Below are positions 8,601 through 60,833 of a stretch of 64,000 nucleotides of DNA, one piece after another. The notes beneath the pieces were generated by a model. That model saw only the letters and a program-made list of their open reading frames with translations. It was not told the origin of the DNA and made no database searches. Origin of the DNA: Bugula neritina. Lineage: Eukaryota; Animalia; Bryozoa. The position numbers and the translations under genes are program-made. The stretch is taken from the NCBI GenBank assembly GCA_964035545.1, contig OZ037773.1, positions 5,981,751 through 6,045,750 on the forward strand. The letters are read 5' to 3'. Position 1 is the stretch's first letter. Each line of letters starts with the position of its first letter.

Positions 8601-10124
8601 ATAAAAACATAAGTTGAGAAATAAAATGATATTACAATAAATAATAATAATATATTTTAAATACTTATGACTTTTGCTGATCGAATAAAATTAAGCCAAC
8701 AATATCAAATTCCTCACATAAACTTTCTTAATCAAGTTTGATTGTTGGGGTATAAAAAATATTGATTAATTTTTTTGCAGAATAGTAAATGCATTTTAAT
8801 ATGCAGTTGCAAAGTTACATCGGCTCTACAAAAGTCATCATATTCTGGCGTGCATGATAGCAGAAATGGGAAACATGAATGCATGCAGATGTTTGATTAG
8901 TTGTGTGTTGTCCAGGTGCTAGATTGCAGGTAAATATTTGGTTTCAACGAAATGCTGCACACAAGCTGAATGTAAATAAAGTATGGATTTCAAATGGTGA
9001 TAAATTAATCAATGCTAATCAATAAAATTCATAAGTCAACTGATCTTTTGAACAAAGCAAAAGAACCTGTATTGACCTTTAAGAGCAAGTTGATACCAGG
9101 ACTTCATACAGCATTACTAGACACACTAGAATATTAGTTACACATTCATAGAGCACTGAAACTCTTATACATAGCAGTTGACTTATAAACAATTGAAATC
9201 GGGGATATAATTCTGCTCTTTTAAAGGTAACATGTTATTTATTGATGCTATATTTAGAACCCTGTTGAGTTAATTGTTGAGATTGAAAATATTCTCTGTA
9301 ATTTAAATTTTTTTTATAACATCATTATACCATTTATAATCAAATATAGTATTATTACTTGGATTATGCCACTATATCAGATATTCTTAGTACTATAGAG
9401 CTACTTGGAAATTAATGATATCTTGAAGCAGAATTGAGATGTTTGTATGCTCCCTGTGACACGAATTGTGATTTTTTACTCGAACTAAAATGCTGAAAGA
9501 CGCTGAAATTATGATCTTGCAATACAATTCCTGTGTAATATTTTTTACAACATTACAAGGAGTCATTATTAATTTTTTACACTGCAAGGCCCTCATCAAA
9601 AATCTTGCACATTCAAAATTTTATTATAATGTGGATATAACATAGGCTACGAAAAAAATCTCTGATCTATAAACTTTTGAGTCGTATAAACAATATAACT
9701 AAGAGCTGGCTATTGCTCCTACTTTAAGTTTATAGATTTCAATGTCAATGTGTCAGGATTTCAGTGTGTCAGAGCTATATGCAGCTGTGATTACATGATG
9801 CTTGGGGTTAAAACTCTAAAATTTCGGTAAACTCTTCCAGGTTTAGTCACAAGCTTTACAGCAGACCTTAGGGGTTAGTGCTTAAGAGTTACCAATTCCA
9901 TTCTTATTAACCAGTAACTGGGTTATAGTAGATACGGTTGTAGGAATTCCCATTTAACATGTTTACGAAAGACCAAGGCAATTCAACTGGTTAGTCACAG
10001 GCAAACCCTATAATAAGGTAAAAGCCATATGACCCATGCATATTACGCCCAACTCTTGTATCAGTTGTCTACTAACAGGAAGCAAACATTTTTTTTAGAC
10101 ATCAGAAACACGACCTCTCTACTC

Positions 10125-10613
10125 ATGGATGCAGATTCGCAGCAGAAGGCTGTAGCGTTCGTTGAACTTCTTTTCGATGTAACAACAATAGGAGCTCTGA
10201 TCGGTAGTCTCACCATTTTCTGCGAAAAGCCGCTAAGCCATGCCCAGTCATGCTGCACAGTCACCTGGAGTATTGTGAAAATAATACTTGCCATGGAGGG
10301 ATTTTTGTGTGGTTGCTTTGTGATCCAAGATTGGGACCATAAACTAGCAACCTTTATATCAGGAATCATTGTGATTGCTATAATTACATTTTCTTCACCT
10401 AAATATTATTATGATTGGAGTCCGCCGGTTTTTGACTTAGTTGCATCTCTTTCCCAGTTTAGTATCTCTTTCATTTTTGAAATTAGTAAGTCTCATGATG
10501 AGGATGTTAATGGCATAGTATTTGTTAAAGCACTTTTCATCTCCTTGGGTGCAGTGTCATATTGGTTTAATTTCCGGGATTCTGAAAATGGCACAGTTTG
10601 CAATTGTTGTTGA
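10125..10613 (+). CDS. Orphan small multi-pass membrane protein (162 aa, about 4-5 TM segments) with a single coding exon
   Basis: ORF with alternating hydrophobic segments. An acceptor-like ctaacag at 10072-10078 precedes ATG 10125, and AATAAA occurs at about 10872. No family recognised. Confidence 0.6.
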   Translation: MDADSQQKAVAFVELLFDVTTIGALIGSLTIFCEKPLSHAQSCCTVTWSIVKIILAMEGFLCGCFVIQDWDHKLATFISGIIVIAIITFSSPKYYYDWSPPVFDLVASLSQFSISFIFEISKSHDEDVNGIVFVKALFISLGAVSYWFNFRDSENGTVCNCC

Positions 10614-11480
10614 ACATTTTTTTTTACATAAAGAATCAAACTCTACACGGGTTTACAAGTTATGTTTTACCGCATAAAACTATATTTGAATTTATATAAA
10701 ATATTATTATATAGTATAACTTATGTCATGTATTATTACACACCCAGTAGTTTCAAATAAGCAGCGCTTCCTGTGCTGTATAATGCATTTAAAGCTTAAT
10801 TATATTTTTAATCATTTTATTATATCAAAAAGGCCTACCCACGCAGATATTACTAATTTTTATTATTGTTGAATAAATAAACTGTAATAATAAAAACAGC
10901 AAATGGGATGAAGTACAGGATGGCCAGTTCGTTAGGCAGTTTTCTAAATACTACATTTATCAATAGTACAAATAGTCAGTGGAAAAATATATTCTGTGTA
11001 CGATTGAAATACTAATATAATATATATCAAAATAGTCAGTACAACAGTACAAAGCCTGCTATGGGGAAATTACTCCCATTCCCAGGCAAATTAATGATAA
11101 TAATCATCATATATTTGCAAACGAGTGAATTTAAAGTTTCATAATATTACACTTCATCTGTATTTGAAAGCTATAAGAATTAGGTTACAAGTTCACTTAA
11201 CGTTTGTACAATTACTCTATTACTGTACTTTGGGGATACAAATACTAGAAAAGACATTAAATGCACTATCTATTAGGTGAACAATAAATTGAAATATCAG
11301 GTATATCACAAAAAGCAATGCAAATACTGTATGATTGTAAATTAGTAGGACCTTCGTGTGATCGACGTTATATTAATACACCAACAGGCATAGCTGCGGG
11401 TCCGGTAAGTTTAAATATCACAATAAATGCATTAGAAGCTATCTCTCTTGGCAATGAGTCCTATTCGAAGTTGTCTTTTC

Positions 11481-14400
11481 TTACCCACAAGTACCACTTG
11501 TGAGTTTGTAGAACATGTCTTCATTTAGAGCTTGATTTTTATCCTGTGACCGCATGGATAAATATATGTAGCCACCTGAAAAATTCAAAAATGTTTTTGA
11601 GAAAATATGATGCATTATAATTATATTATAATGATTAGAATTTATATCGTAACTATATTACGATATTTACCTGAAACTATACCAATGAATAAACAAAACA
11701 ACTAAAACAACATAAGATAATATTATTTGGGCACTGGGCACATATAAAAAGCCAACGTCAAACTTTTTCCCGTGTAATATGCATGAAGATAGGATATTGT
11801 GTGATAACATCACAAAATAACAAAACTTCAAACACAAAGATGTGAGAAATATTGAAAATATTTACTGCCAAACAGCATAAATGGAACTATTAATTTGCAG
11901 AATTAACTATAAAAGCTAAGAACACAGGTTTAGGAAACAAAACTGAAGAAATTCAAAGCAAGCAGCTGATTAGGTTACAGGTAATCTGTAGAACTGAGGC
12001 AACAGTGAACACAACTCCTGTCTGCCCCGGAACCAATCAGCATCAAGATGAGCACGCCTAGACATGCAGGGAGATCGCACAGAGCAAGTCTTACCTAGGA
12101 ACTCGTGAAACACTTTGCAGTCGGCGGAAAGGGGTTTGATGGCCAGTTTCTCCTCTTCAAAATCAACAATGACCTCTCTGTTCTCCCAGTGGACAGACCA
12201 AGAGCTCATTGTAGAAAATCTGTAAGTTTTTGTCACCTCTGACGTCTTGGGATTGAGCCGAATGAGTCGGTTGTAGCCGATGCCAACTATTTCCTGTTAG
12301 GAGTAGAAATATGAGTTTGAAGGTGTTTGTGAGCTAGCAGCTGAGTAATGCATCGTGTATTCATAACGATTGTTTAGCCTTACGGATGTTCACCATTCAT
12401 AATTCTCAACAAGCAATCATATGAATGGTGAATAATAATACATTTCATATATAAACTGATTGAACCAAGAATGGACCAATTGTAAACTAGCAGGGCATGA
12501 AAAAGCTTTTCAAAATGTTGCTTGTTGAAATTAAAAAACAGTTTAACGAATTCCAAAGCACAAACTTATGAAAAACCATGAAATTTGCAGATGGTATGTA
12601 CACGTGGACGTGTGTACACGCAGTTGTATATACATGCAAACGTGTATACATGCAGACGCACCTCTTTTTTGCTGTTGCGGAACTTAACTAAGAAGTAGGT
12701 CAGCCCGTACTCCGGAAGGGCCTGCCATGCTTTGATGTAGTTGAGTTTAGCTTCAGATAAGGACATGGCGCAGACGTTGCTGTGTGCTTCTAGAATCTTC
12801 TGAGCCAACTGTTGAAAGACACAGATTATACATAATAGGTAATTATTATAGGTAGTATGGTATTGCAGGTGGTAGGATATTATAGACTCTGTAAACCTTA
12901 TATTATAGGTAATGTTATATTATAGGTGATGTTATACTATAGGTAATGTTATACTATAGGTAATGTTATATTGTAGATAATGTTATATTGTAGGTAATGT
13001 TATATTGTAGGTAATGTTATATTGTAGGTAATGTTATATTGTAGGTAATGTGGTATGATAAATTATGTAAATAACAAATCATAAGACTCCACTCATGCAA
13101 TACAAGAAATCACATCTATACATAACTTAAGATTAGCAGCAGTAATTAGCATTTTAAAATGAACAAATTGAGAATAAACACAATGACGTTAAAATGCTGA
13201 CCTTTGTTTTGTTTTTCTTGAGGAATCTGGGCGCCATGTAATTGCTAGGTTCGATACTGTCTTCTGACACCGCTATAGGGGTGCTGATGTGGGTGGGAGT
13301 GCTGCTCGGCTTCTGTAAACTGAGGAACTGTTCAATGTTCTTCACTTCCGCATTGTAAGACGAGTCGGCCATTGTGTGACCTTTGCTGCCAAGTCGGCAC
13401 GCTGCCATCCACCTGGCGTACTGATCCTCCTATTGGTCAACATTGTACACATCACAAACAGCAGCCTGTATTTACTGAGTATTTACTGGAATTCACTCTA
13501 AGGACCTGCTATACAGCAACACATGGAGGTCTATTCAAACAGCGTATCTCTCGGGAAACTTTTATCTATACACTTACATTTTCACAGCTATCCACGTATT
13601 GGGTTATATATAATACTTACATATTACTGTTCACACACTGAGTTATATAATACATACATATATAATATAATACATATACAATATTATATACTTACATCTT
13701 CACAGCGCAACCATTCCTCAGCTATGCCTTCTGCACCAGGTATAAAAAGTTTAATAATAAATTTTCGACCACTTAGATTTACGTCTGGCTGAATCTCACA
13801 GTCTATAAATAAAATATAATCACACGATTAGACAACTCCAGGTAAATCCAATTAGACCACAAAAAGTAACTGATGAATGAAATAAAGATATTCTCAAACT
13901 ATATACAATATTTGAGTTATAGCCAACATTTATCAACTCAATAATAATACGAGTGGATAACTTCAAAAAAGCTAACTTTTTTGTCTCGCAGTAAAAAAAC
14001 TTGAGATGAGTATTTTAGAAGGGAAAATCTGACTTTCAGAACAAATGGAAAATAGTATAGTAAATATAACAATAGCTGTATTCTATCAAATGATGGTGCA
14101 GTTTTATGCTTAGTGCATAATTAGCAAACTGATATTAATACACTTATATATACTCTCCTTTACTTTGGCTATGATACAACAGCTACTTCAGCACCACACA
14201 TGACTCACCTCTGAGGTTAATATGATGAATAGAATTTTGATTGGTTTCATCAGGACTTTTGTAGAAGTATATGAGTGTATCACGGAGCAGGGCATAGTAA
14301 CGCTTGGCCGACTTCATCGTGTACTTCTTGGGTCTACAGCATATCATATATGAATGAGTACTAACAGTATATTATATCTCAGTACTTTACTTACAGGTAA

Positions 14401-42792: not shown

Positions 42793-44290
42793 CAACATTG
42801 CCATATAGCATCGTGCTGACACAATAGATACTAATAGAATTGATAATACTTTGTTCCAGGAGAGAAAGAAAAAGCAATATATAATATTATATTGCTTTAG
42901 ACTACATAATTAAGCTTCAAATTGCTATGGTATTAAAAAATATTTGGTAAATTTGTAGAACTATCGATTTAAAATTCTAAATTTATCAAAGTTCTAGTTA
43001 TGCATATGGAGAAAGTACAATATGAAATGTAGATATGGAATAATTAATGTCAATGATAAGTACTTAACGAACGAAACTTTTACCAAATAGTATACCTTTT
43101 CTCAATCAGAATTATTATACTAAAAGCTTGTAAGTTTTGTTCCAGCTGCATAGGCATTATAAAACATGGCTACATCACACAAAAAAATTAATAATATTTG
43201 GCAACTTTCCAAACTGCATCCTTCGATAAAACCCAGCCACTTTGGTACCAGTCTGTTCGCCTTAATGGCAGTATGCAGAACTTTCTGCATGCCTCATAAA
43301 ACCGGATAAAAGTATTTAAACAAGCATCTTGGCTGACAGCCAGTATTGTGTCTTACGTTAACTTGTTTTGAACTTGTTCTTGCTTTATAACCAATTTTAT
43401 GGTACTCTGCTTACATATTATTGTCTATAAAACACCAAATGCAATTATTTGAAAATAGCTAGAGTTTTAAAGACTAGAAAATAGAAATTTACAAATGTGT
43501 AAATTCTTGAAAGAAACACTTTAACGCCAGGAACTAAGATTTTTTTATACTTAGTATAAGGTCTAAGAAAGTTGGATATAATATATAATCTAAAAATGTC
43601 AGTTCAAATTTTGCCTTTTTTGCTGACCTTTACTATAATCGTAGGCAGTAAACTAATTACTCTGTAGAAAATGGGAGCTAAAATGGTTATCAATCAGAAT
43701 TGACAAAAATCAAATAGTCATATTGCATATGTTGCAAGATTAGCAACAATGAGAATGCATATTTCTATATTAATAAGAAAATGCAAATTTTAAAGCACTT
43801 CAAATTCTGCTTGAAAAACTCGAAATAATTTATTTTACAATTTCATGGGATCAATGATGGTGGTTTTAGAATTACTTTGCATCCCAATGTTGGGAAACTT
43901 TCCATCATTATGTTTATGTTAGTATGCTAATAATAGCTTTCAGTACGGAAACTGATACCAAAAATAAGTTTGAGTGTTAACATTGGTTAGCTAGTACAAT
44001 ATTTATCCTATGTTAGTGTGCTATGTGAATTACTATATGTCCTTGTGCTAGTATAGTACAGATATATCACACTGACAACTAAAATATTAGTTTTGGCCAA
44101 GTAAAAATATATTACCCTGGATAGACTTTAGACGAGAAAATTCTACGAAACAAATTTGAATTCGATTATTATATGAATATAATCCATAATTACTATAGTA
44201 TAAATATTTCCTTTTACAGTACTTATTGACTTGTTAAATAATATTTCTGACAATAAATATACTAATTGCAGTGTTGAGATTACTCAGTAG

Positions 44291-44354
44291 TGCCTTTGGT
44301 GTAATTGTTAGTGTGCATGCTAGGCGGAACTGAGTGCAATTTCCAGTGAGGGCA
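44291..44354 (+). mobile_element. Degenerate tRNA-like sequence (SINE head or pseudo-tRNA)
   Basis: A-box-like tggtgtaattgttag, B-box-like gagtgcaatttcc and a pairable acceptor stem tgccttt/gagggca. There is no proper anticodon arm. Confidence 0.35.
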
Positions 44355-46587
44355 AAATTATTTTATACTAATAACTAACAAACTCATTAATCAGTACTAT
44401 AATATAGCAAAGTGGATGATGCAATGTTATGAAGGTTACATAAAACGTGGACTAATTCACATTAACTTTATTATATTATGAAGCTCATTATGGGAAATAA
44501 TCTCTCCCCAGACTGTGATTGGATAATCTCGCTTTGTATATTTAATTAAGATGGAGAGTTTGTGATGATAAAGTCAAACAAAAATTTATATTGCGTAGAT
44601 AAACCGGAACTAGGAATTGTTATAATCTTCTTTTCTCAATACAAAAGTCAATAAATCAGTCTAATGGTACTGTTAGATTATCTAAAGGGTTATTTGAAAG
44701 GCAAGAAAAATGCCAATAAATTACAATTTAAAGCTCAAGTAGGACATTTTCCTATCAATTTAATTATAATAGTTTAAACACTTCAAAGTAGGTATTATTA
44801 CAAAAGTTAAACTTTTTACACAAAAGGTTAAAAACGAGTGTGTCTGGTGAATCAAATATGCATATCATTATGATAAAAACCCAAAAAAATACAATATTCT
44901 ACCAATTTTACACGATCTCAATATAATATTGAAAAGCTGCAAAAACATCAGTGTCCTACAGATGCGCATATGTTAAAAGTGCCTAATTGAAAATATTCTT
45001 ACAATTAAATTAAAAGAATTATTGTCAGAAACAAATAGTATATAAAGTGTTTGCTGCAGCCATACAACTGATTGGCAAATCGCCTGGAGGGAAATAGGTT
45101 AGTGAGGTGGCGTAAGATGACCGCAATCGGATTACAGGTAACAATATAATTTAATTCTACCTTCAATAACAATTTTGATGGCGTCATAGCTTATATGTTC
45201 ACCCTTATGTACCACCAGAAACAGCTTTTAGTAGAGCAGTAGACAGGCAAAGCATATCTGTAATAATTTTCTTGCAACTCTGATGCTTATACATACATGT
45301 AGCCATGCAGATAACATCAGTAGAGCATATATAGTTCAATCACAGCATCAGTTAAACAATTACTTACAGCAGCTACAGCCATTCACAGTAATAAAATTAC
45401 TTGATTAAATTAAGTTTATTTTGGTCAAATAAAGTTAATCTAAATATTTTTTTTTTGAGTTGCTACTTCCAGAAAACCTGAACCCAACCCTTATTAATTT
45501 TGGATTAATAGAGATTCCAATGAACTTAATAACTAAGCTACTGGTACATTCCCACACTCTGGTTGCTGACTGCACTATACTAAACTTGCAACATAATCTT
45601 GACTATGCCTGATGCAATGGCATTGCAGTGATGTCATTAGATGCAACTTTCATGTATTTATGTCACAAAACAATATTTTTTGTCGAGATCCACAAATTCC
45701 AGCACGTCTTGACGTCAGAACATCTCCTGTTTTCTCTCCGGTCTCAATATAAGTTTAGTCAAAGGAATTCCAGGCAGTGTCTCTCATCAACTTAAAGTGT
45801 CGAAAGTGCAAGAAACTGCTGGCAAAATACTGTTGACATGTTATTAACTAATATATTAAGCTTACAGTTATTAGTGTGGCAGAACACTTTCGATGAAAAG
45901 TAATAACTTTATATACAAACTTACAGAACTACAAATAGCAACGAGAAACCCTTCTCATAACTGCATGTAACAAATTCTATGAAGTTGAGTAGTTTATATT
46001 ATATAATTTATAAGCCTACATATTTTACAAGGTAATGTTATGGATAGCAAATATGTGCAAGTGTTGGCAGGTGTCAGGGGATATTGACATGTTACAGACA
46101 GGCATACTAATGGCAAACTACATACTGTTGTAAACTGTGTACCCTTCATAGTTTGTAGATAATAAGATATTCTAGAATCTAGATCAACACAATGTCTTGC
46201 TTTCTGATCTGCATTGCTTTACACTGATTATCATGAGAAGGTTTTATGGCATTCTATGAATTCTTGCATATTGAATTTTTGAACAATGACTATTTAATTG
46301 CATTGTCACTCTCATTGATATGTGGTCTCAAAAAGTTAAGACTGCTAAAAACTAACCGCTAAATACTGAGCAATGCTTTAGACAAGCTTTATGTATTTTC
46401 TTTTGCTTAATTTTTGTTTCATATTAAATAATTACTAACTTATTGTCATATAGTAGTAACCTTTCTTATTTTATTAGCAAAATATGTGTTTAATTTGAAA
46501 GTATGTACAAAAAGTATAGAACAACCATAGAAAATTAAGAATCAAATAGCAATAGTAAAAATACTTATAAGTAGTAATACGAGGCTG

Positions 46588-49500
46588 TCAACCACCCAGC
46601 CCTTGCTTTGGTCTCTGTAAGATGTTGAGAAATTTGCCACGGGTCATCTCATGAGCTACAAACACAAGCAAAACCCATACGGTAGTTGAGAGTATACGAC
46701 ACAATATAAACTATTGCTCTAGCTGAAAATATCTTCAAAATGCTGAAAAGGGAAACTGGAAATAAAGTCATAATATCTCTAAATATGAAACCTTAAAGTT
46801 TAACTACTTACTAGAATATGCAGCTTATAGTTAAGCATGAGCATTTTATATGATAAAGAGAGGTAGATTATAGTATCAGATGAGGTAGTTTATATTACAA
46901 GATGAGGTAGTTTATATTATAAGATGAGGTAGATTATATTATAAGACCAGTTTAATACACGGCTGCAAGATACAAGAGGGCAACAGAATTTCCAACAAAA
47001 GTATAAACAAGAACATTAATTAATATCCTTACCTTCATCCAGCCCAAGTTGATAGGCTAAGTTCTGCAACTGACGCACTTTATCAAGAAGCTGGGCAGGG
47101 GTCAGATTCCCCAACTCCTGCACCATACTGATATCCTCAGTCTCCAACTCATTCATCCACTTTGGTTTGTTAGAAGCGGAACTGCCAGGGTACGACTATA
47201 AAGAGGGAGGGGCTCTGAACTCATAGCTACTGCCTTCATTATGAAAAACTCAACAGTGTAGTTTAAAACTGTCAGTTATAGTCGACTGATGGTTTCATCA
47301 TACTTGACTATTAACTTTTAAGATTTGTTCGATTTCTTTAACAAACATTAGGATTGAGTTTTAGCAACTCTAATACAATACTTTTGAAAACTTGAATTTT
47401 ATTAAATAAAGTAGCATTTCTTTACAAAAGTAAAATCCATTATAATTTAGGCCAAACTATAAAACCTAATAGAAGCACCTGTTGAGTTTTGTCAGATAAG
47501 CTTTCTTAAAATCTCAATCAAATTTCACTAAAAACTATTCCAACATTTCTAATGAAAAGTTACGACACAGTTAAAATAATCAGCATATTGCTAATACTAC
47601 CTCTATCTAACACCCACGTATAACTGCATAAAAGATTTGAAATTACCTTCAAATTTAAAAACTAATGCAATACAAACGCACATTGCTTGCTGTTGATAAA
47701 AACCTGATTTGTCTGCCCATGTTTTTATGATCGAACAAATTTCATAAAAAACTATATTTTATGACCAGAAAATAATATTTATGATTTTCAAGCTTAACTT
47801 ACATTTGACAGTCCACCCATTGCTGCAAATTCATTCACTCCAGGCACTAAAATATGAAAATACTTTTACACAGTAGATAAGATAACTCTACAACTTGATG
47901 CACCTGAAATAATCTGTGATAATTTTTAATCTAACAGCAATAGGGTCATTCCGCGTCAAATCAACCAAATTTCAGAAAGTCCCACGCCTTTGCGTCTCAG
48001 ATTTTGTTCATATTTCCACCAAATGAACCTACACATGTATTGAGTGCTATTCTTGAATATTTCTGGCCTGACACAAAAACTTTTTGAGAAATGAATATTT
48101 CCACGAACAAAAGTTGGGAAAAATTTTGAGGAAAATTTGCGATTTTTACTTTTAGACCAATTTGTAAACGTCCATATCTCCATTATTTTTCTAGTCTGAA
48201 CCTTGAAATTTGGTGTGTGATTTGATAACACCTATCAATTTGCACTAGTAGTAACACATACTGCAGAATACTTTGTGTGCATATATACTAAGCCATTGAA
48301 AATTGGCAATTTTTTATGAATTTTGAAAAATTTTGAATATTTGCCACATCACAAAAGGCAGTAATTTTTATTTTACTTCCATAAATTTTTATCCATAAAT
48401 AGTTGATTATGGTTACTTTATACTCCTTAATTTGTGTAATTTTTAAAATAAATAAAAGTTGTAGATTTTTTCAGGATGATGAATATTATTCTTAGCCTGG
48501 GCGAATTACTAACCTGATTAGGGTGCGGACCAATCTGCTATATTTAGGCACATCTGTTTCAAAAGCCACAATTATTTCCGGCATGTATTAAACACCACTG
48601 TCATCGAATTAGTTAGGCCTATTGTGTTCAGGGCCATGGTGTTATATTTGGGTATGTTTTTTGAAGCTACTCTTGCCTCAGCTACTTAATGTACTTGATT
48701 CCAGCAAGATTTCAGCTGTTTCACACCATTCACTCACAGAAATAACAATTGCTATCTGAAACCTAATGGGAATATCATATAATGCCGATCGGCAGAATTT
48801 TTCTTACGATATTACACACAAATCAGATTTTATCGTAATCTTCAGTAGATTTGAAATATATAGGAAACATATATGTATCTACTTGATATTTTGAACAATA
48901 TGAATAATAAAAATGTATGATCCCAACATATTATATTGAAAAATTGCATTTTGCCGATTTTCGTACGCATACCATTTTTCCGTGCGATTTACTTCAAGTT
49001 TGGACAATATAAGGACGTCCAAATTTATGAGTCTACAAAATACACTAAATGACGTTACAGAAAATACTTGTTTGAAATATTTTACTGTATTCAAACATCG
49101 GGTTACATCCTTGTGAAGTTGGGCGAATTTTCACATTTTCTTCACTTTGGGTGTCTATATCTTGAAAAATGTTATTTTAAAAATTACACAAATTAAGGAG
49201 TATAAAGTAACTATAATCAACTATTTATGAATAAAAATTTATGGAAGTAAAATAAAAATTAATGCCTTTTGTGATGTGGCAAATATTCGAAATTTTTCAA
49301 AATTCATAAAAAATTGCCAATTTTCAATGGCTTAGCATATATGCACACAAAGTATTCTGCAGTATGTGTTACTACTAGTGCAAATTGATAGGTGTTATCA
49401 AATCACACACCAAATTTCAAGGTTCAGACTAGAAAAATAATGGAGATATGGACGTTTACAAATTGGTCTAAAAGTAAAAATCGCAAATTTTCCTCAAAAT

Positions 49501-52500
49501 TTTTCCCAACTTTTGTTCGTGGAAATATTCATTTCTCAAAAAGTTTTTGTGTCAGGCCAGAAATATTCAAGAATAGCACTCAATACATGTGTAGGTTCAT
49601 TTGGTGGAAATATGAACAAAATCTGAGACGCAAAGGCGTGGGCCATTGGTTGAGTTGACACGGGATGACCCAATAGTAAAACAGAAACAAATCAAAAATT
49701 TTCTAAACTCTGAATATTTTTAGATTTAGTAAACTTAACCTGCCTATCAAATTCTTCCTCTGAAAATTTCCTAGAAAAAGTATTTACAACTAGTACTTTT
49801 CTTGGAGACACTTTAAATACAAAATGTGTTCCATGCTTCAAAGTAACATCCAGTAATTAAAATTCAACAGGCTGACAGAAATATTCGGAGTTGCATGCTC
49901 TACATACTTTGTTCTGGCCATAACTCTGGTGACGCTCTATCCTCCAGGTTCTCTAAACTCATCAACTTGTATGAATCATTATCATATTCTACAACATATG
50001 TTAGAGTTATCTACTCTCGTCATATTCTACAACATATGTTAGAGTTATCTACTCTCGTCATATTCTACAACATATGTTAGAGTTATTTACTCTTGTCATA
50101 TTCTACAACATATGTTAGAGTTATTTACTCTCGTCATATTCTACAACATATGTTAGAGTTATTTACTCCTGTCATAGGCTACACACTAGTCTCCATTACT
50201 ATCTATATTCTGCACAGTTTTTCACACAAATGGACTTTTTTGAGAAAAATGAATAGAATTCTTCATACATGAAGACTCCAACTGCAGTCAGTAAATGGCC
50301 ATAAACAAAGTTGCATAACCGAGATTCAGGGAGACATCACTGTATGTATTGAGGTGCAACACTAGCTTCTACTTGTTCACCTTGCATTACAAAATGGGGC
50401 TATGCTGGTGCCCTGACAAAATCTTCAGTCTTTTCTAATAATAATTCAAAGGACTGTTTTTAGATAAGGTGAACTGTTTAGCCTGCACCGAATTATAACA
50501 CCAGCAGTTTTGTAAAATAATTACACAGACACAAAATCAATGAGCTGCAATATGGCAACCAATAATTTCTACAGCAATAATTGCAGATACCAAGCACAAG
50601 AAACAACGCTTAGAGTAAAATTTGGAGTTTAAGGCAGAAACACTACTTTCACATTTCTATACTTCATACTTGAAGCCAGAAAAAGTGAGTGTAAATTGCA
50701 TTTATGGCCAAGAGACGTTCAAAAAAGAAAAACACCAGTCGCTGTAAGAATAATTTCAAGTTTGAAAAGATTCGAAACATTACCACAGTTATGCTGCTCT
50801 ACACAATGTAGATTTACGAAACATTATTTTATATAATATTATTCTACATTAATGCTTATAGCAACTGAGCTAAGCATTAAAAAAACTGAGAAAATGCAAT
50901 TTGAATAATAGAAAGTGAAGCTACATTTCACAGCTGCTTGATAGAAAATGATAATAGCAATAACGGCATCAATCATAAAATACCATTCAGTTTTGGGTAG
51001 CAAAACAGTGTGCTTTTTCTACAAACATCTCATTAGATACAATACATCTACAGTTCTACAAGATATAAGGTTAAAAAAAATCTATAAGGGAAAATGTATA
51101 CTACTATTATTCTGCTTTATTCACATGGTATGTTTCACATATAAAATATATCCAATAATATAAACTGAAGTGTTCAACTATGAGATGAGATCTAGTTCAA
51201 TGTGAGTGATAGCAAGCTTCACGAAATAGTAAACTAGACACATGAAACATCAAAAAGTAGCAAAACGTGACTACTCCTAAGTTTGACTGTAACACTGGCT
51301 AAGTAAGGGACAGCGATGATAATAAGCTGACTTCATTAAACTCATGTTGAGCAGCAAGCTGTATTTGTTAGTGTAAGTGTGAGAGTAACACAGCAATTTA
51401 AAATCTGAATAACTATAGTATGAAAAGTAACAACTTCTCCCGTTGACTGAACTTGAACTACAAGAGTTTAATCAATAGCAACTATGAAATTAATAGAAAC
51501 AGTAAAGAGTAAAATTATAACTAAAAAATTTGTATCTGCTGTCACAGCAAACTGACTCAACATTTATCCAATTCAAGTCATGACTCAAGCAAGCAACATC
51601 AAGTCAAGTTGAGTTCACACAAGTAGATCGAGTCAATTTGCAATAACTTGCAAGTATTTGAAAATGTCAATAAATACAATACACTGAGGGTATTAAACCA
51701 TCAGACACACTGAGTAGTTCAAATAAAAAACATTGCAGCTTTAGATCTAATTATTTAATAGTTAATATTAAGCTTCATTGAATAAATAATAATAGTAATC
51801 TAATCAAATAAGTTGGGCCCTACAAAACTTCTATAAATAGCGTAAGAATAATTTGATGTTATTATGAGTAAGAGTTATCAAAACAGATAAACTCACAATA
51901 ACCAGGCACAACTACTTTTACTTGTAGTCTTACAGCTCTGTTTCAGTCCGAATTACAGTTACCAGTAATAGTGTGTTAATATATCATTATTACAATTGAT
52001 AACTATTAGTCTTGCCTGCTTTTTACCTTCAATTATAGTCTGCAAAAAAATTAATCAATACTTGAAATGACTTACAGGGAAAGTTCAAGAGCAACCCATC
52101 TGTAAGCTCAAACTAAAATCTATATTCATAATTAACTGATGGCAATTACCATCACAATCCATTATCATAATGATAATACGAAGAATCAAGATGGTGATCA
52201 TGGTGGTGTGTGACAAGGATCACTTTAGGTTTAATATCAACTTCAAGTTCATCATAAATCATGGTCAATTATTAGTATTACCTTCAACTCTAACAATCAT
52301 CATATCAACTTACTTTTGGAATTTGTTAATCTGACTCACATGAGCAACTGCAATGAAAATTGTCTACTTGGTCACACAAGGACAATCAATGAATCATGAT
52401 TATCATTGTGATGGTGCCAATCACTCAATCACAATGATAATCATGTTGGTATAGTCATATTAATATTTATATTAAATTTGATATAAAATTGATAAACGAA

Positions 52501-53167
52501 ATGATTAACTTAAAATTTAATTGACTATGATTGACATTCACATTGTTATTAATATTATCACCATCATTGCCTCATTATCTAATTCTAATTGCAATTCTAT
52601 TATATTAACATAAAATATATTATATTATACTGATAGTGATACTCATATCGATAATATTGATAATCATAATGATAATGTAAATGATATTCATAACCATATT
52701 GATATTGTAATTGATACTCATACTCATAGTATTATAATAAATAATTATAATTATATTTATTCATAATCATAAATTTATTACAATCATTATTTTAATGAGA
52801 ATGGTAATGAGAACTATTACTATTGTTATCAGTATCACCTAAGGCTCGAACAAAATACTCATACTGATACTGCAAGTGTAATACTAATACTAAGTCTAAT
52901 AGTAATACTAATACTAATAGTAATACTAATAGTAATACTAATAGTAATTGTCAAAATGAAAATTGAACTTTCACTTTTAATGATTTCTACCTCCTTTAAT
53001 ACGGATCAGTTTGAATAAGTAAAAAGTTTAATTCTATACTTAAACAATTAGAAATTACATTTTACAAAACATGATTACACAATCGATGAAATACACTACT
53101 ATTAGCAAATAAATGAAATGAAATAATTTAAATTACCCGCATTCGACGTATGTCCATTAGCGGCCAT
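46588..53167 (-). CDS. LIN52: LIN52 (MuvB/DREAM complex subunit), 128 aa. Exons 53167-53137, 49988-49908, 47846-47803, 47195-47033, 46655-46588.
   Basis: Translation MAANGHTSNAEYDNDSYKLMSLENLEDRASPELWPEQMPGVNEFAA...KPKWMNELETEDISMVQELGNLTPAQLLDKVRQLQNLAYQLGLDEAHEMTRGKFLNILQRPK matches LIN52 hallmarks (LxSxExL, RASPxLWPEQ, LQNLAYQLGLDE, EMTRGKFLNIL). It is missed by the ORF track because the exons are short. Confidence 0.96.
46857..46945. repeat. 22-bp minisatellite, 4 copies (gatgaggtagtttatattataa), in LIN52 intron 4
   Basis: Direct inspection. Confidence 0.8.
47943..49671. mobile_element. Non-autonomous DNA transposon with ~500-bp TIRs and a 4-bp TSD (AATA); Sola2-like by termini (inference)
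   Basis: 47943-48451 is a near-identical inverted copy of 49172-49671 (few substitutions, one ~9-bp indel). Ends are GGGTCA...TGACCC, flanked by aata (47939-47942) and aata (49672-49675). The 720-bp core has no intact transposase ORF. Confidence 0.9.
49982..50171. repeat. 38-bp tandem repeat, 5 copies, containing the LIN52 exon 2 branch point and acceptor
   Basis: Units start at 49982, 50020, 50058, 50096 and 50134. The minus-strand unit reads cgagagtagataactctaacatatgttgtag|aatatga. Confidence 0.95.
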
Positions 53168-53465
53168 ATTTGACACTTCCGGTTTGTTAGTACTCTCAAG
53201 CACAAATATAGTTAAAGTTTTTTTATTTTTAAAAACACAATTTTTTATTTATATAACTGTTGTTGTTATAATTTTTGTTGTGTTTGAAAAAAAATTGTTG
53301 TCAAGTTTAATTGATTATTTTCAAGGCTAACTACATAAAAAATTTGCAAGGCATTCAATTTCATTGCACACTACGTAAGCAGCTGCACGGCGTTTTGTGG
53401 TGGTTTCGGTTTGCTGCAACATCTGTCTTAGCTGTCCTATAAAATATTATTCCTTAGCTGCTTAC
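53168..53465. promoter_or_regulatory. Bidirectional promoter shared by LIN52 and ALDH6A1
   Basis: Only 298 bp separate the two ATGs. On the minus strand there is an ETS-type CCGGAAGT (53175-53182) and a YY1-like AAATATGGCCGC over the LIN52 start codon. Confidence 0.75.
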
Positions 53466-56400
53466 ATGGCTGGAATTATAAGAAATCGCCTTTGTTCTCA
53501 AGTAAGTGCAGTAACAGTACTTGCTCGTTTCTCTAAGCAGTCTTTAACATTAAGTATGAGTTAGAGTATCACTATCAGTATCAGTATGACTATGAGTATA
53601 ACTATAAGTATAACATTAACTATAAGTATAAGTATAAGTAATAGTATAACTATAAGTAATTTAGTATAACTCAAAAAACTTCTATTAGTAGTACTAGTTG
53701 TAGTACTAAGACTAGTAAGAGTAAGTACAACTCGAACTACAAACTCAAAGTTCTGCAAGTTCATAAGCATCAAATGTTTAACTTTATGATTAATACATTT
53801 TTCTTGTACATGCTGGTGCTCTTTGACCATTTAAAATTCCATCAGCTGTTGAAATATAGGTATTCAATTAAGTTGATCAGTTTAAAAAATTTAATTAACT
53901 TGTTGCTAGTCTTTGCTATTTAAGCTAGCCAAAATATTTAATCCTTTAATTATTTAATAAAATTAACAAACATGCAAAGCTATGCTTTAGACTTTTAAGC
54001 TGGCATGATTTGTGATTTGTTTTAATGAAAGCATTAGGCCTATATAATAGATTAGCAGATTCATTTATCTCGTTGTTATGAATATTTGTTTGCTGCTGCT
54101 GCTGTTTGGTGACTGTTTGTAGTATTTTATTATTTTTATTTATTTGTCACCGGACACATTAGTGTAGGCCTAATGCAACTATAGTTAGAGTATTAGCATG
54201 TTATTTGTTTATTTACAAATGTTGATTTGAGTATGTTGTAGAAGAAAAATTATAGGCTACTAGAGGAATTATATATACCTATATATTACTAATACTTCAA
54301 CATTTTCATAGCATTGTGTTACATTTTAACTCAGTTCACATCTATTTCATTTTAGTTTTAAATATCTGAAGCTGAGGGGATTTATAAATAGCGGAAGTTC
54401 TATATAATTTTACAGAGTGCAAGGAATGTAGTTTTCTTAGGGAGAGGGGGGGTGGGAGACATTGCATTGCATCCCATTTTGTGGGTTCCTTGTGAACTTT
54501 TATAACCCGCTTTCTTCCAATGTGGGGTGACATGTTGCCACATCTTGTAAATACTTTAAATGAGCTTCTATTTGAAATAATCCAACAGAGTTTTGACTTT
54601 TGATTTTTTCATTCACTTTTCATGCCTACTTATATTATAGCCAGTATTTATACTGAATTTAGCAGCGTGTTGTCATGTCTGTGATATGCTATAAATCAAT
54701 CAATGATTGTGTTTTGCTAAACTAACTCTGTGTATTCATAAATATTTTAGGCACTTCAACTTCAGAGGAGCCTCCGTAATGGGTACCACCTAAGAAGTGT
54801 GGTAAGTGATATCTCTACACTGATCATAAGTGAAATATTAGCGAGTATATGCATATCTCTATATTTAGCAACTAGATGTTGTCACAAGTAATTTATATTT
54901 GATACTTGCAAGGGCACAGTTGAAAGCTTGGTTAGCTTTGAACTCACGAATAGATTTTTATATATTTAATAATATGTATATTTTATATAAGAATGTATAG
55001 TTGTTATATTATATATATGGTATATGATAGTATGGATGTAATTTTATTACCAACTTTTAGAGCACCACCAAACTGTTCCTGGATGGCAAGTTTGTAGAAT
55101 CCAAGACAGATGAGTGGATCGATCTTCACAACCCTGTAAGTGTTACATTCTATTATATTCTAATAATTTCTTCTAACTCAGTAGTTCGAATAAATCGTTT
55201 TTATAACCTGTAAAACATATTATATATAATTTGTCTCATAAGTATGTTTTTTTATCTCCTTTGAGATGAATGAGAAACCCAGCACTTAGTTTCAGACACC
55301 TACTTGTTGCTAAGTTTATGGGGACGTGGCACACCCGCATTTATATTTATAGTTTTCTCGCTCAATAAAATCTAATGGTACATGCATATTCTTAGTCTTT
55401 ATACTGTAACCTATTCCCTCAGGTGTCTAACTACCTTTATTGGCCTGAGTCACCTTCCATCAAATGTGTTAGTTTATTAAAACAATTTGTACACTTTGTC
55501 TAAACTCTAAACCTTCTGTTTAATGTGTTAGTTTATTGAGTTTTTATGATTTTAACCTCACAAGGTCAAAATAGCATATTTCATATAAAAACGATACTGT
55601 CACCAATATCGCAGTTATGTTACTCTTGCTATGCTGGACATTTTGCTTTCTCCGGTATGATAAATAATGTGGACAGCCTTGTGATGGGATCAACTATTAC
55701 TAATAAGGCGCTTGTTAGCTAGATACCTTGAAGTTACCTTCTCTCTACTCTTCCCTCCAGGCCACCAATGAAGTGATCACCCGGGTGCCCGTGTCTACCA
55801 GGGCTGAGATGCAGGCAGCAGTCGACTCCAGTGCCGAGGCATTCAAGAGCTGGTCTCAGACCACGGTTCTGACTCGGCAGCAAATTATGTTCAGATTCGC
55901 TGACTTGGTTCGAAAAAATCTGGTAAATTTTTAGAACATTAAATTTTTTTGCATTTGCTGAAAAAAATTATTAAAGTATTATCTAGTACTTTATAGTATC
56001 TCGCTCTTGCTGCCTTTATAATTTAGTATCACACATGTAAGGTTTCTGTTTGTATGATGTTTCAGAAAGATATTGCTGCCAACATAACTCTGGAGCAAGG
56101 AAAGACCCTTGTGGACGCTGAAGGGGACGTCATGAGGGGACTTCGTAAGTTCTGATAGTGTTTAAACTTCAACTACATCTGTACATCTGTACTGGGTGTA
56201 TACTCCATATATACTGAATGTATACTATGTATATAGTATATACTGAATGTATACTCTGTGTATACTGAATGTATACTCCGTATATACTGAATGTATACTC
56301 TGTATATACTGTGTGTATACTCTGTATATACTGTGTGTATACTCTGTATATACTGTATGTATACTCTGTATATACTGTATGTATACTCCGTAAATAGATT

Positions 56401-59400
56401 TCACTAGTAGACAAATCTACTGGTACCGTGAGATCTATAGACCAGAAAGGTGAGCTAACCGCTCTACCTTCCCTTCCAAGGTTACCTTAGTGATAGAGTG
56501 GCTTAGGGGTCCTCTGCACTGCGCCCCCTACTATTCGGTGTATTAGGGAAAGCAATGGTAATGTTTTAAAGTAACTGAAGTCTCTTTTCATGAGATATAT
56601 ATTTGTAATGACACGCTTACCAACCACTATTTCCAGACAACAGAGCCTACGGGCTAGCATCTGCTTAGTATAAATAAATGTCTACACGTTTGTTGTCTAT
56701 TTACCAGAAGTGGTGATTGAGCATGCTTATTGTTTGGGCAAATCGTTGAGAATTTGTTCAGTGATATGGGCATTTATTCACACTGAGAGCTCTATAAAGT
56801 CTCTTTTTGTGGGGGGGGGTAACTTCTTTTAATTTGCCTGCCTGCATTCCATTCATGATTTTTATTAAACCACTGTCAATTATATTCATGCTTATGCTGA
56901 CTATTTTCACGACGCTGTAGAAGATTTTTAGAATAAATATATCAGAAATTAAATAACTGAAGAGCACCATGTGAAACTGTTACATTGATGGCAGGTCATA
57001 TAAAATAACAATAAGTTCTAGCTAGCACTTGCTAATCTTCCATCTACCTTTCTTTTCTCTAGAGGTCTGTGAACACGCCTGCAGCATCACCTCACTTTGC
57101 CTGGGGGAAACACTGCCCAATGTTGCTAAGGATATGGATATTCACTCTTATCGGGAACCCCTGGGGGTCACAGCCGGGATCACTCCTTTTAATTTCCCCG
57201 CTATGATTCCTTTGTGGGTAGGTGAAGATAAGTTACCGTGCTTTGCCTTGGACAGTAATCGTGCCCCCATGTTTGTTGGTTTCACACGGGTTGTTGGTGT
57301 TCATAAAAGCAGCACTTCTCTCTCTCTGTGTACTAGCAATCCAGGCTATTACTCTGTATTATATCTCAGTCCTGCTTTGGTCCCAAGTGTTTATTTAAAG
57401 CTCTGTCCACACTAAGCATAAACCTGATCATTCAGCTCTGCTATCAGCTTACTTTTAGCTGTAGTGTGAACTTGGCTTAAGGCTTGAGTCTTAAAGTGTC
57501 AAAATGTCTGCTATAATATGACCAAACAGATAATGGTAATTCTTGTAACAATGTGTAAACCTCTACTGTATTGTATTGCATTATTATAGATGTTTCCTTT
57601 GGCCACGGTTTGCGGAAACACAATGGTCATCAAACCGTCAGAACGAGATCCTGGTGCTACAATGATGCTCTGCGAACTGGCCAATGAGGCGGGATTTCCT
57701 GCCGGAGTTGTCAATGTGTTTCACGGTGCTACTGACGGTACGTAGAATTACTCCTTTTCTCTTGCTATTATCTAAGATCTAGATGCTTTTGGAAAAGATC
57801 TTTTCACAATGCTGTTTGCATTTGTCTCCCCTTCTCTCTTGCAGCTGTCAACTTTGTATGTGATGACCCGACTATCAAGGCCATCTCCTTTGTCGGCTCT
57901 GATACAGCCGGCCAGCACATTTACGAGCGAGGAGCCATGGCCGGGAAAAGGGTGCAGTCAAACATGGTTAGTTCCTTTTTTATATTTGGTTAAGACAGTT
58001 TTGGTTACTTTTTATTTCATGTGGAAAATTAACTTACTTGTTTAAAATACTTGACTTATTTTCTTTCAGTCAAAAGTCAAGTAAGTGTAGCTCAGACCAA
58101 AGGACTTTGTCCAGTTGAGATTACAGAATATATTACAGGATATATTATTATGACACACTTCCTTTATTGTTTTTAATTAGCAACTTGGGATTTGTCAACT
58201 CTAGTATAAAGAAAATAAAGTATAAAGAAATTGCCTTGGCCAGTCACCACTAACCAATAGTTTTAGAGTTTACTGTTGCATAAGTTGGTACTTTTTTTCT
58301 GTTGTTCTTCTATTGGCTGGACCGTAAATATATACAACTAGCTCCAAGTTGTCTGGCTAGACAAGCTGTTAAGACTTTTCACTCACCTTTTAGGGTGCGA
58401 AGAACCACGGAGTTATAATGCCTGACGCCAACAAGGAAGCCACTCTCAACTCATTGGTTGGTGCAGCCTTCGGCGCAGCCGGCCAGAGGTGCATGGCTCT
58501 GTCTACTGTGGTCTTCGTGGGGGAGTCCAAGAAATGGATCCCTGAAATCATTGAGAGAGCACAGAAACTAACAGTAACCGCAGGTACTCTTACAGTAGCA
58601 GGTGCTCTAACTCAAACTGACAGGTGCTCTAACTTACACTACCTCGACGCTATTATTTCATTACTCTAACACTGTGTAAGAATATAGGTTACCATGTGAG
58701 CTCTCCACATGAGAGATTTATTGTTATATAACTTTTATATTCTCCCATAGTGTTTGTCGTAGCTTCAACAACTGGTCATCATTTCTAAACTTCTTATTCT
58801 TTCACCGTGACTCTGTTAGCTCCACCTCCACTGAGTGCTCTACTTCTGTCTGTCCAGGTCACGAGCCCGGAGCCGACATCGGACCTCTGATTAGTCCTCA
58901 GGCTAAGCAGAGAGTCCTGGACCTGGTTGAGAGCGGTGTGAAGCAGGGCGCCGACTTGCTCTTGGATGGGAGAGATATAGTTGTGCCGGGGTATGAGAAA
59001 GGAAACTTTGTCGGGCCAACACTACTTAGCAATGTCAAGGTGAGGGTCACGCGCCAAAAGTTTAGTCAAAGAAATCGGCAGCTAGTGTTTGTTTGTCACT
59101 TTATGGTGTTGTTTTACCTCTTGACTTCATGAGCTCTTCAGTTAAACTGGCAAACTACTCTCTACTAATAATATCATATTACTTTAGATATCCTTCCAAT
59201 AGGCTGTAGGTTTGCCTCAATCTCGTGTGCATAGATCTTTCTTGTCTCTCCTTGTATTCATACGGTGTGTAGCGCACATAGGAATAGTTTGATTGGTTTG
59301 CTAGTTGAACTAGTTCGGGTATATTTGCCATTCGTGTATTGTGTGTGTGAGCTACTCAATTTATATCACAACATGTACAACTGTTGTTTTGTACACACAC

Positions 59401-60833
59401 AGCCAAACATGGACTGTTACACTGAAGAGATCTTTGGACCTGTTCTCGTAGCTATGGAGGTAGACACTCTCGATGAGGCCATCCAACTTATCAACAACAA
59501 TCGCTATGGCAACGGCACAGCAATATTCACCACCAACGGAGCCACCGCTAGAAAATTCACACAGCAGATTCATGTCGGACAGGTACGGCAATTTCTGTGA
59601 CTATTTTGGAGATAAAATTGTAGTTATTGGTTTCACTCATAGCTGTCTAAAGTGTATGTTAGTTGTTTACCGTGCGGAGCTAGTATTTGTGTCTGCTGTC
59701 ACAGCTAGAGGATGTTGGCACTGATTCTAACCAACACACTGTTAACATGTGTTCTACCAAAGAGAGGTGTTGTTTAACGTGATATTGTGTATTCAGGGAC
59801 ACGCTCACCCTTCTAGAATATTCTTAGTTTATACTGAGTCGATTCGAGAGGCATCAATATTTTTAGTAACATGCAAGTTTTAGGTGAAAGAAGGCGCTCA
59901 TGCTTCCTTAGAAATAATTATTTGAATACCTCATCACATAACCTATATAATAATTATAATATGTAATAACATATGTAATATATTCTGTAGTAACATATGC
60001 AATATATTCTGTAGTAACATATGTAATATATTCTGTAGTAACATATTATATCATAGATTATAAATAAAGTATTAGAATATCAAGCTATTTCTTTTTATTT
60101 GCTGAGCTGTGTATATCTTCATGAACTGTAAATCATGTGTAGTCTTTTCTGCACATATAAACTTAGTTCTAGTTTTGGAATTGATTCCATTATAGGTTGG
60201 CGTCAATGTGCCCATCCCTGTGCCTCTTCCAATGTTTTCCTTTACTGGGTCCAGAGGCTCATTCCGTGGAGATCTGAACTTCTATGGCAAAGCTGTGAGT
60301 ATCTGTTGATACAAAATGACAAAGTTATATCATTTTTTGTTTAATGGACTTTGCTCTATGCTCTATAATGCTCTCAAGCATGCAAGGTTGACTGTAGTGT
60401 GGCAACAGGCGAGACAGTATTGAACAGCTAGAGGCTGTAACCTGGTCAATTTGGCAACTTTATTACAAAAATCCTGGTAAAGAAAGTAATTTTATATATG
60501 TATATATCAATGGAATCCTTTCGGAGTTGCAATATCTTGGATTTTTGTAGATCGTGGATTATTGTGTTATTCTGTTTAAAGCACTTAGAAATTTAATCCA
60601 ATTATGTTCAAGTCTTAATACAAATATCTCTGGTAAACAACGTTGCTTTTTTCGTGATCTCAATCAATTACTTCCCAACTTTAAAATTTGCAAAGCACGA
60701 TATGACAAAGAGACACCCTTTATACTTGCAGGGGGTGCAGTTCTATACTCAACTTAAGACTGTTACTCAACTGTGGAGGGAAGAAGACACATCTTCTACT
60801 AAAGCTACAGTCGCTATGCCTGTGATGAAGTAA
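53466..60833 (+). CDS. ALDH6A1: Mitochondrial methylmalonate-semialdehyde dehydrogenase (acylating), 526 aa. Exons 53466-53501, 54751-54801, 55061-55135, 55761-55922, 56066-56144, 57063-57217, 57590-57737, 57845-57966, 58394-58583, 58858-59039, 59403-59582, 60196-60294, 60732-60833.
   Basis: Motifs [57 protein letters not shown] (catalytic Cys), EEIFGPVL and [22 protein letters not shown] are ALDH6-type. All junctions are GT-AG and in phase (1581 nt). Confidence 0.98.
56190..56392. repeat. 22-bp minisatellite (gtatactctgtatatactgtat) in ALDH6A1 intron 5
   Basis: Direct inspection; about 9 units. Confidence 0.9.
59967..60045. repeat. 24-bp minisatellite, 3 copies (taacatatgtaatatattctgtag), in ALDH6A1 intron 11
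   Basis: Direct inspection. Confidence 0.8.

Follow-up and report, generated by a model that had tools for sequence, protein, structure and literature searches.

A natural minisatellite reiterates the exon 2 acceptor of LIN52 in the bryozoan Bugula neritina, and its exon-proximal copy is probably the productive site

In intron 7 of the human F7 gene, a polymorphic minisatellite (a tandem repeat of variable copy number, VNTR) of 37-bp units, the terminal one spanning the exon boundary, carries 5-9 sites identical to the authentic splice donor; use of a pseudo-site would corrupt the mRNA, and the pseudo-sites were silent by experiment, the exon-adjacent site alone being used (Borensztajn et al. 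2006, PMC1557585). As that paper recounts for related cases, the exon-adjacent authentic site is also the only one used in LMNB2 and PDGF, in which intronic minisatellites of 100 bp and 81 bp reiterate the exon/intron junction, and in the CBS gene, with a 31-bp VNTR at the exon 13/intron 13 border, and the interferon-inducible gene 6-16, both of the same junction-reiterating type, the two nearest pseudo-sites are used besides the authentic one; the CBS VNTR was associated with enzyme activity in human cohorts (PMC1557585). Here we describe a 38-bp minisatellite that repeats the acceptor of exon 2 of LIN52 in the bryozoan Bugula neritina, located in a stretch of 64,000 nucleotides of contig OZ037773.1 (assembly GCA_964035545.1, positions 5,981,751 to 6,045,750), hereafter the window, to which all positions refer unless stated otherwise. 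The gene lies on the minus strand. The window comes from the Darwin Tree of Life assembly of Plymouth B. neritina (216.00 Mb), built from HiFi and Hi-C data without RNA (PMC11480708).

The LIN52 array is the acceptor-side mirror of the donor-reiterating minisatellites of F7, CBS, LMNB2, PDGF and 6-16. It has in common with them a unit within the range of 10-100 bp, a terminal unit that spans the exon boundary (by 7 nt into exon 2) and a series of near-identical pseudo-sites, and departs from them in that an acceptor together with its branch motif is reiterated rather than a splice donor. The likeness to F7 extends to the near-equal period, to a set of identical sites, perhaps variable in number among individuals in LIN52 too, and to the damage that use of a pseudo-site would do to the mRNA; however, the authentic F7 donor is the most upstream of its series whereas the authentic LIN52 acceptor is the most downstream, and the silence of the F7 pseudo-sites is experimental whereas the LIN52 array is known from DNA sequence. 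The CBS and 6-16 arrays, as presented in the same paper, are a precedent for an effect on splicing that depends on copy number or repeat sequence, but they are human and on the donor side; those of LMNB2 and PDGF are also on the donor side and have longer units, and by analogy with these two genes we would predict that LIN52 uses the authentic site only. Identical tandem acceptors facing one donor have been engineered in globin genes (Lang & Spritz 1983; Kuhne et al. 1983, both as cited in PMC1557585), but these constructs were artificial, held two copies and gave results that conflicted between two laboratories. NAGNAG acceptors likewise place alternative AGs next to each other at one intron end, but there the AGs are separated by only 3 nt, have a common branch point and tract and keep the frame. 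The LIN52 sites are 38 nt apart, which is not a multiple of 3, and each has a branch-like motif (CTAAC) of its own; the array thus falls outside the NAGNAG type. Literature searches found no natural acceptor-side junction minisatellite, which is not proof of absence. A preliminary description of the locus had implied less precedent for its idea than there is, as donor-side minisatellites of like kind are known in several human genes (PMC1557585).

A single array was reported at this site by Tandem Repeats Finder (TRF), with a period of 38, 5.3 copies, 95% matches, no indels and a score of 355 (Table 1). Read on the minus strand, the unit is AATATGAC(G/A)AGAGTA(A/G)ATAACTCTAACATATGTTGTAG; its tail is CTAAC-ATATGTTGTAG and its head, AATATGA, is identical to the first 7 nt of exon 2. 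Each unit contains two branch-like TAAC motifs, ATAAC with its putative branch A at -19 and CTAAC with its own at -13, followed by a poor pyrimidine tract, TTGTAG and the 7 exon bases. With the units numbered from U0, the farthest upstream, to U4, which adjoins exon 2, the G of the AG lies at 50141, 50103, 50065, 50027 and 49989. The CTAAC of U4 is at 50004-50000, its putative branch A being 13 nt 5' of exon 2. Over positions -22 to +7 the acceptors of U0-U4 have one and the same sequence, and only two positions vary among U1-U4; U0 is the most diverged unit, its divergence being located at the 5' end. A sixth acceptor-like TAG is found before U0 at 50179-50181 (gtgtag followed by CCTATGAC); it is more diverged and would also read into a stop. 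When up to 3 mismatches were allowed, all matches to the unit in the 216-Mb assembly (216,009,554 bases) fell inside the LIN52 array. This ruled out a dispersed repeat or a transposon as the origin of the unit, and the uniqueness of the unit to this locus indicates a local duplication.

The five exons of LIN52 were read by hand and their ends were set by a script. Joining exon 1 to position 49988 and adding exons 3-5 gave an open reading frame (ORF) of 128 aa encoding LIN52, whereas joining it to any of the four exon starts further upstream gave EYD(E/K)S(R/K) followed by TAA (Table 1). In silico joining thus bore out the claim of the preliminary description that only the most downstream acceptor yields LIN52, and its account of the unit, with CTAAC, TGTAG and 7 nt of exon 2, and of five near-identical acceptors proved exact down to the AG positions. 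Exon 4 alone accounts for a match to the LIN52 domain PF10044 (57.2 bits, cut-off 22; 47004-47180 on the minus strand), which is the sole match to this domain in the genome; a processed pseudogene that could have served as a fossil of the LIN52 mRNA was rejected on this ground. The translation of exon 2 contains, as had been proposed, an LxSxExL motif (L19-M-S-L-E-N-L25) and a candidate RxSP site of the DYRK1A type (R28-A-S-P31). In human LIN52, binding to p107 and p130 occurs via LxSxExL and the RxSP site, after phosphorylation by DYRK1A (PMC4421984).

The sole B. neritina LIN52 found in protein searches is a deposited entry of 109 aa ('lin52 [Bugula neritina]', P0245), which derives from the draft genome (2020) of a colony from Virginia with genotype 'S' (PMC7576161) and is encoded at 10001-11698 of its contig, L006. 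It is identical to our model over 108/108 residues (20-127), starts at Met20 within exon 2 and does not include exon 1. Conservation of exon 1 (MAANGHTSNA) extends over both Bugula assemblies and Watersipora subatra, the LIN52 of which (P0257; 127 aa, 74% identical to P0245) starts MAAQHNKNAADE and has the N-terminus MAAQHNKNA. The Watersipora exon 1 ends AAT GCG G/gt, so that position and phase of the intron are as in Bugula, and on this comparison exon 1 is a real coding exon. The deposited Met20 model thus appears to be truncated at the N-terminus.

Evidence for use of the last acceptor comes from the comparison of the two Bugula haplotypes. Among the 128 LIN52 codons, 17 differ between the window and L006, 16 by synonymous changes and one, the last residue, by a non-synonymous change. 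The 19 codons that precede Met20 share the frame of the remaining codons only if splicing uses the 49988 acceptor, and they show 4 synonymous and 0 non-synonymous differences. Unless these codons are translated, about 44 replacement sites at a neutral divergence of about 15% would be expected to show several replacement changes. Purifying selection on the N-terminal codons argues that the 49988 acceptor is functionally used, with productive splicing to the last copy occurring at a functionally relevant level, sufficient to constrain the LIN52 N-terminus. Together with the persistence of the array on haplotypes about 15% diverged at non-coding sites, selection acting through 49988 fits tolerated, mostly silent decoys at least as well as it fits a regulator.

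Contig L006 belongs to an independent PacBio/Illumina assembly of another colony and carries the array at the same place (38-bp unit, 4.4 copies, 91% by TRF). Aligned to the window, it has exactly one unit fewer (4 against 5), the extra unit being U0. All L006 units read CTAAT in place of the window's CTAAC. The third L006 unit ends in TAT instead of TAG, which leaves that decoy dead, and the L006 exon starts AATATGACAAT, so that the repeat extends 10 nt into the exon. The non-coding DNA around LIN52 is only 82-87% identical between the assemblies (42800-59700 against L006). An array with unit variants of its own in flanks so diverged indicates a real and old array whose copy number varies; the array predates a deep split of haplotypes or lineages, has changed in copy number and shows concerted evolution. 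The array behaves as a VNTR, as the preliminary description had it, with 5 and 4 units in two assemblies labelled B. neritina, the haplotypes being so diverged that cryptic species or mixed samples are possible. Identity as low as this between the assemblies suggests extreme polymorphism, cryptic species or a mixture of samples. In run X5, which comes from the same UK study as the window assembly, alleles of both window and L006 type were found at 49972 (27.8 of a depth of 74.3). Both haplotype classes are probably present in this run, and the two forms of the array may be alleles within one population, which is suggestive only. A second difference in copy number between the assemblies within LIN52 concerns a 22-bp minisatellite in intron 4 (46846-46946, 4.6 copies; L006 11311-11481, 7.8 copies).

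Tandem repeats are error-prone in assemblies, and no single short-read contig spanned the array: the contig of run X1 stops at 50011 and those of runs X5 and X8 stop at 50008. A mis-assembled, collapsed or expanded repeat is nevertheless exceedingly improbable. The window assembly is based on HiFi reads, the independent assembly of the other colony has an array with its own unit variants, and the breaks are where a k of 31 predicts them for the repeats of both haplotypes, 50011 being the first unique 31-mer if 7 exon bases are shared, as in the window-type repeat, and 50008 if 10 are, as in the L006 type. On this point too the earlier claim, which had named an assembly artefact as a refutation, held.

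In Watersipora, no acceptor array was found at exon 2 of LIN52, and a single acceptor is present (contig L007). With the same intron and a single acceptor in this outgroup, the array is a novelty of the Bugula lineage and the single acceptor the ancestral state; the array is present on both Bugula haplotypes, one decoy AG having been lost on the second. Watersipora intron 1 also contains repeats, namely a 41/42-bp minisatellite (L007 13622-13949, 7.9 copies), located some 250 nt before the exon 2 acceptor, and, 15 nt before this acceptor, a 15-bp repeat (L007 14151-14182, 2.1 copies). Neither takes in the acceptor.

We propose that the array is a lineage-specific minisatellite in which the exon-proximal acceptor is productive, the upstream copies are silent or minor and the copy number drifts with little consequence, and we give this reading a probability of about 0.6. 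The array would have originated when two short TATGA repeats, one located 31 nt upstream of the intron 1/exon 2 boundary and the other at the start of exon 2, underwent slippage or unequal exchange. U0 starts CCTATGAC and exon 2 starts AATATGAT; the resulting TATGA microhomology, spaced 38 nt, is the likely substrate of the first slippage. Each unit would thus carry a complete copy of a weak acceptor, and joining exon 1 to the most downstream copy would give the productive LIN52 mRNA. This copy would win as the sole one followed by a real exon body, with its purine-rich GGAGGA/GAGAAC stretch, and the strong donor AAA/GTATGT, 81 nt away, would help the real site. Exon definition and enhancer proximity would act on an enhancer-dependent weak acceptor, the upstream copies being 3' pseudo-sites that are silent or yield minor transcripts with a premature stop. 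The pyrimidine fraction of the exon 2 acceptor between -20 and -4 is 0.53, the lowest in the gene, compared with 0.59-0.76 for the other three acceptors. Since the five acceptors are locally alike and only their downstream context differs, exon definition or enhancer proximity is favoured; we infer this mode of site selection, and the silence of the decoys, from general knowledge of splicing. A 10-nt palindrome, AACATATGTT, is present in the units, and predicted folding of the array is somewhat stronger than that of shuffled sequences (z = -2.2). RNA structure as the selector of the site was rejected, as the predicted pairing probabilities over positions -22 to -1, the CTAAC and the AG are equal at all five sites. 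Minisatellites are very common in this genome, with 33 loci of period at least 12 making up 6.1% of the window, and an array at a splice site therefore needs no adaptive explanation.

A number of points weigh against this proposal. Firstly, the five sites have identical sequences and equal predicted accessibility, so that nothing local would favour the real one. Secondly, scanning from the branch point to the first AG would give the advantage, if any, to the upstream copies, as would the 5'-to-3' scanning that was proposed for F7, and the engineered acceptor duplications gave, as that literature is summarized in PMC1557585, no concordant answer. Thirdly, the gene model deposited for the other assembly begins at Met20, without exon 1. 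Lastly, as long as no junction is seen in RNA, use of the decoys could be substantial, and the contigs of one library labelled RNA-Seq (run X8) extend from exon 2 to 20 nt past the productive acceptor, into the repeat. In this run the exon 2 contigs have a depth of 67.7; no depth is seen over the adjoining 200 nt of intron 2, and the depth deeper in intron 1 is 0-8. This weak signal fits RNA spliced at intron 2 yet still having repeat sequence ahead of exon 2, which could be pre-mRNA with the long intron 1 retained or an isoform spliced to an upstream acceptor.

Sequence reads were searched with a 6.9-kb stretch as the query, too long for an mRNA of about 0.5 kb to reach the word threshold, and the output was dominated by a high-copy element of intron 2 and by simple repeats of intron 1. 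The four sequencing runs that were aligned are all DNA-like or consist of contigs only, and no exon 1/exon 2 joint occurred among the matches listed from them. Neither the spliced exon 1/exon 2 junction nor exon 2 itself had an exact-pattern match in metagenome contigs. In a search of protein representatives, LIN52 relatives were found at 85% identity or less only; the search with P0245 gave nothing closer than Watersipora, and that with its N-terminal part gave no match. The simple repeats are AT-rich (TAATAC and related), lie at 52600-53100 and reached contig depths of up to 900,000.

The array might instead act as a rheostat of poison acceptors, use of the decoys rising with the number of units and the resulting mRNAs, which stop after 16 codons, being removed by nonsense-mediated decay (NMD), so that array length sets the dose of LIN52 and the assembly of DREAM. 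Every decoy is indeed a full copy of the real site, and in silico the in-frame TAA, six codons past each decoy, lies more than 50 nt before three further exon junctions, as expected of a stop that triggers NMD; copy number differs between the haplotypes, pseudo-sites nearest the exon are used in the donor-side arrays of CBS and 6-16, and the run X8 signal gives a weak hint of RNA with repeat sequence before exon 2. However, the array has been tolerated on two haplotypes of a conserved single-copy cell-cycle gene between which the synonymous divergence (dS) is about 0.2, and only one decoy has decayed. The frequency of minisatellites in the window and the lack of an array in Watersipora also speak against a rheostat, and we consider it unlikely. 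Less likely still is the broader view of a heritable dial, in which decoys take up a fraction of splicing set by the number of units and lead either to NMD or to a LIN52 that starts at Met20 and is unable to dock on the pocket protein, DREAM/MMB being tuned in this way between colonies. A regulatory role of the array, if it has one, is more likely small.

The second branch of such a dial can be considered on its own as an isoform switch. A stable mRNA would be made from an upstream acceptor, the exon 1 ORF would become an upstream ORF, and translation would restart at Met20 to give a LIN52 without Leu19 that can join MuvB and is a poor binder of the pocket protein. In its favour, Met20 is positioned one residue into LxSxExL, the sole deposited B. 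neritina LIN52 model has precisely this start, and the human L18A mutant peptide has a dissociation constant of 14.9 uM for p107, reported as reduced affinity (PMC4421984). Such a switch is nonetheless highly improbable: every additional unit adds an AUG with a short out-of-frame ORF that would hinder reinitiation, the 19 N-terminal codons are under purifying selection, and the Met20 start is most simply a truncation by AUGUSTUS.

Table 1. Positions of the acceptor-bearing repeat units and of the LIN52 exons in the window
Feature	Position	Strand	Description
38-bp minisatellite	49982..50183	-	copies the end of intron 1 (31 nt) and the start of exon 2 (7 nt); from TRF and sequence
Unit U0	50141..50178	-	starts CCTATGACAGG; decoy acceptor; exon start would be 50140; EYDESK-stop
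Unit U1	50103..50140	-	decoy acceptor; exon start would be 50102; EYDKSK-stop
Unit U2	50065..50102	-	decoy acceptor; exon start would be 50064; EYDESR-stop
Unit U3	50027..50064	-	decoy acceptor; exon start would be 50026; EYDESR-stop
Unit U4	49989..50026	-	terminal AG (49990-49989) is the putative productive site, adjoining exon 2
LIN52 exon 1, coding part	53137..53167	-	ATG at 53167; MAANGHTSNA + G; donor G/gtaatt, phase 1; 5' untranslated region extends upstream
LIN52 exon 2	49908..49988	-	EYDNDSYK-LMSLENL-ED-RASP-ELWPEQ
LIN52 exon 3	47803..47846	-	MPGVNEFAAMGGLSN
LIN52 exon 4	47033..47195	-	core of the Pfam LIN52 domain (PF10044)
LIN52 exon 5, coding part	46588..46655	-	includes the TGA stop

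Other features were noted in and around the gene. Intron 2 of LIN52 contains a foldback-like element of about 1.7 kb (47943-49678), the arms of which (47976-48451 and 49172-49647) are inverted, 476 nt long and 99% complementary, with a 720-nt spacer. It belongs to a high-copy family, with read depths in the thousands, and is not present in L006, in which the span from Met20 to the stop is 1698 nt compared with 3344 nt in the window; in the pre-mRNA this element would fold into a perfect hairpin of great length, 230 nt downstream of exon 2. Head to head with LIN52 lies a gene for an aldehyde dehydrogenase (PF00171), at about 53170-53260 and upstream, and at 691-6741 of L006. Over roughly 60 nt upstream of the LIN52 ATG the haplotypes are about 90% identical, which does not stand out clearly from the background of 82-87%. 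Elsewhere in the window, a 123-bp array (4.9 copies, 90%) is followed by a 42-bp array at 3751-4477.

Donor-copying minisatellites such as that of F7 have served as natural test beds for the choice of 5' splice sites, and that of CBS has been linked to enzyme activity. Five identical natural acceptors with their own branch motifs set models of exon proximity, in which the downstream site wins, against 5'-to-3' or first-come models, in which the upstream site wins, and the conflict between two laboratories over engineered acceptor duplications gives the natural LIN52 array some value as a model. If the array did act as a dial, it would be the first natural acceptor-side counterpart of F7 for the choice among identical 3' splice sites. 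Other splice sites in this minisatellite-rich genome have probably been caught in arrays as well, which matters for its annotation. If the decoys are silent, as we expect, the LIN52 array would be a tolerated by-product of repeat instability.

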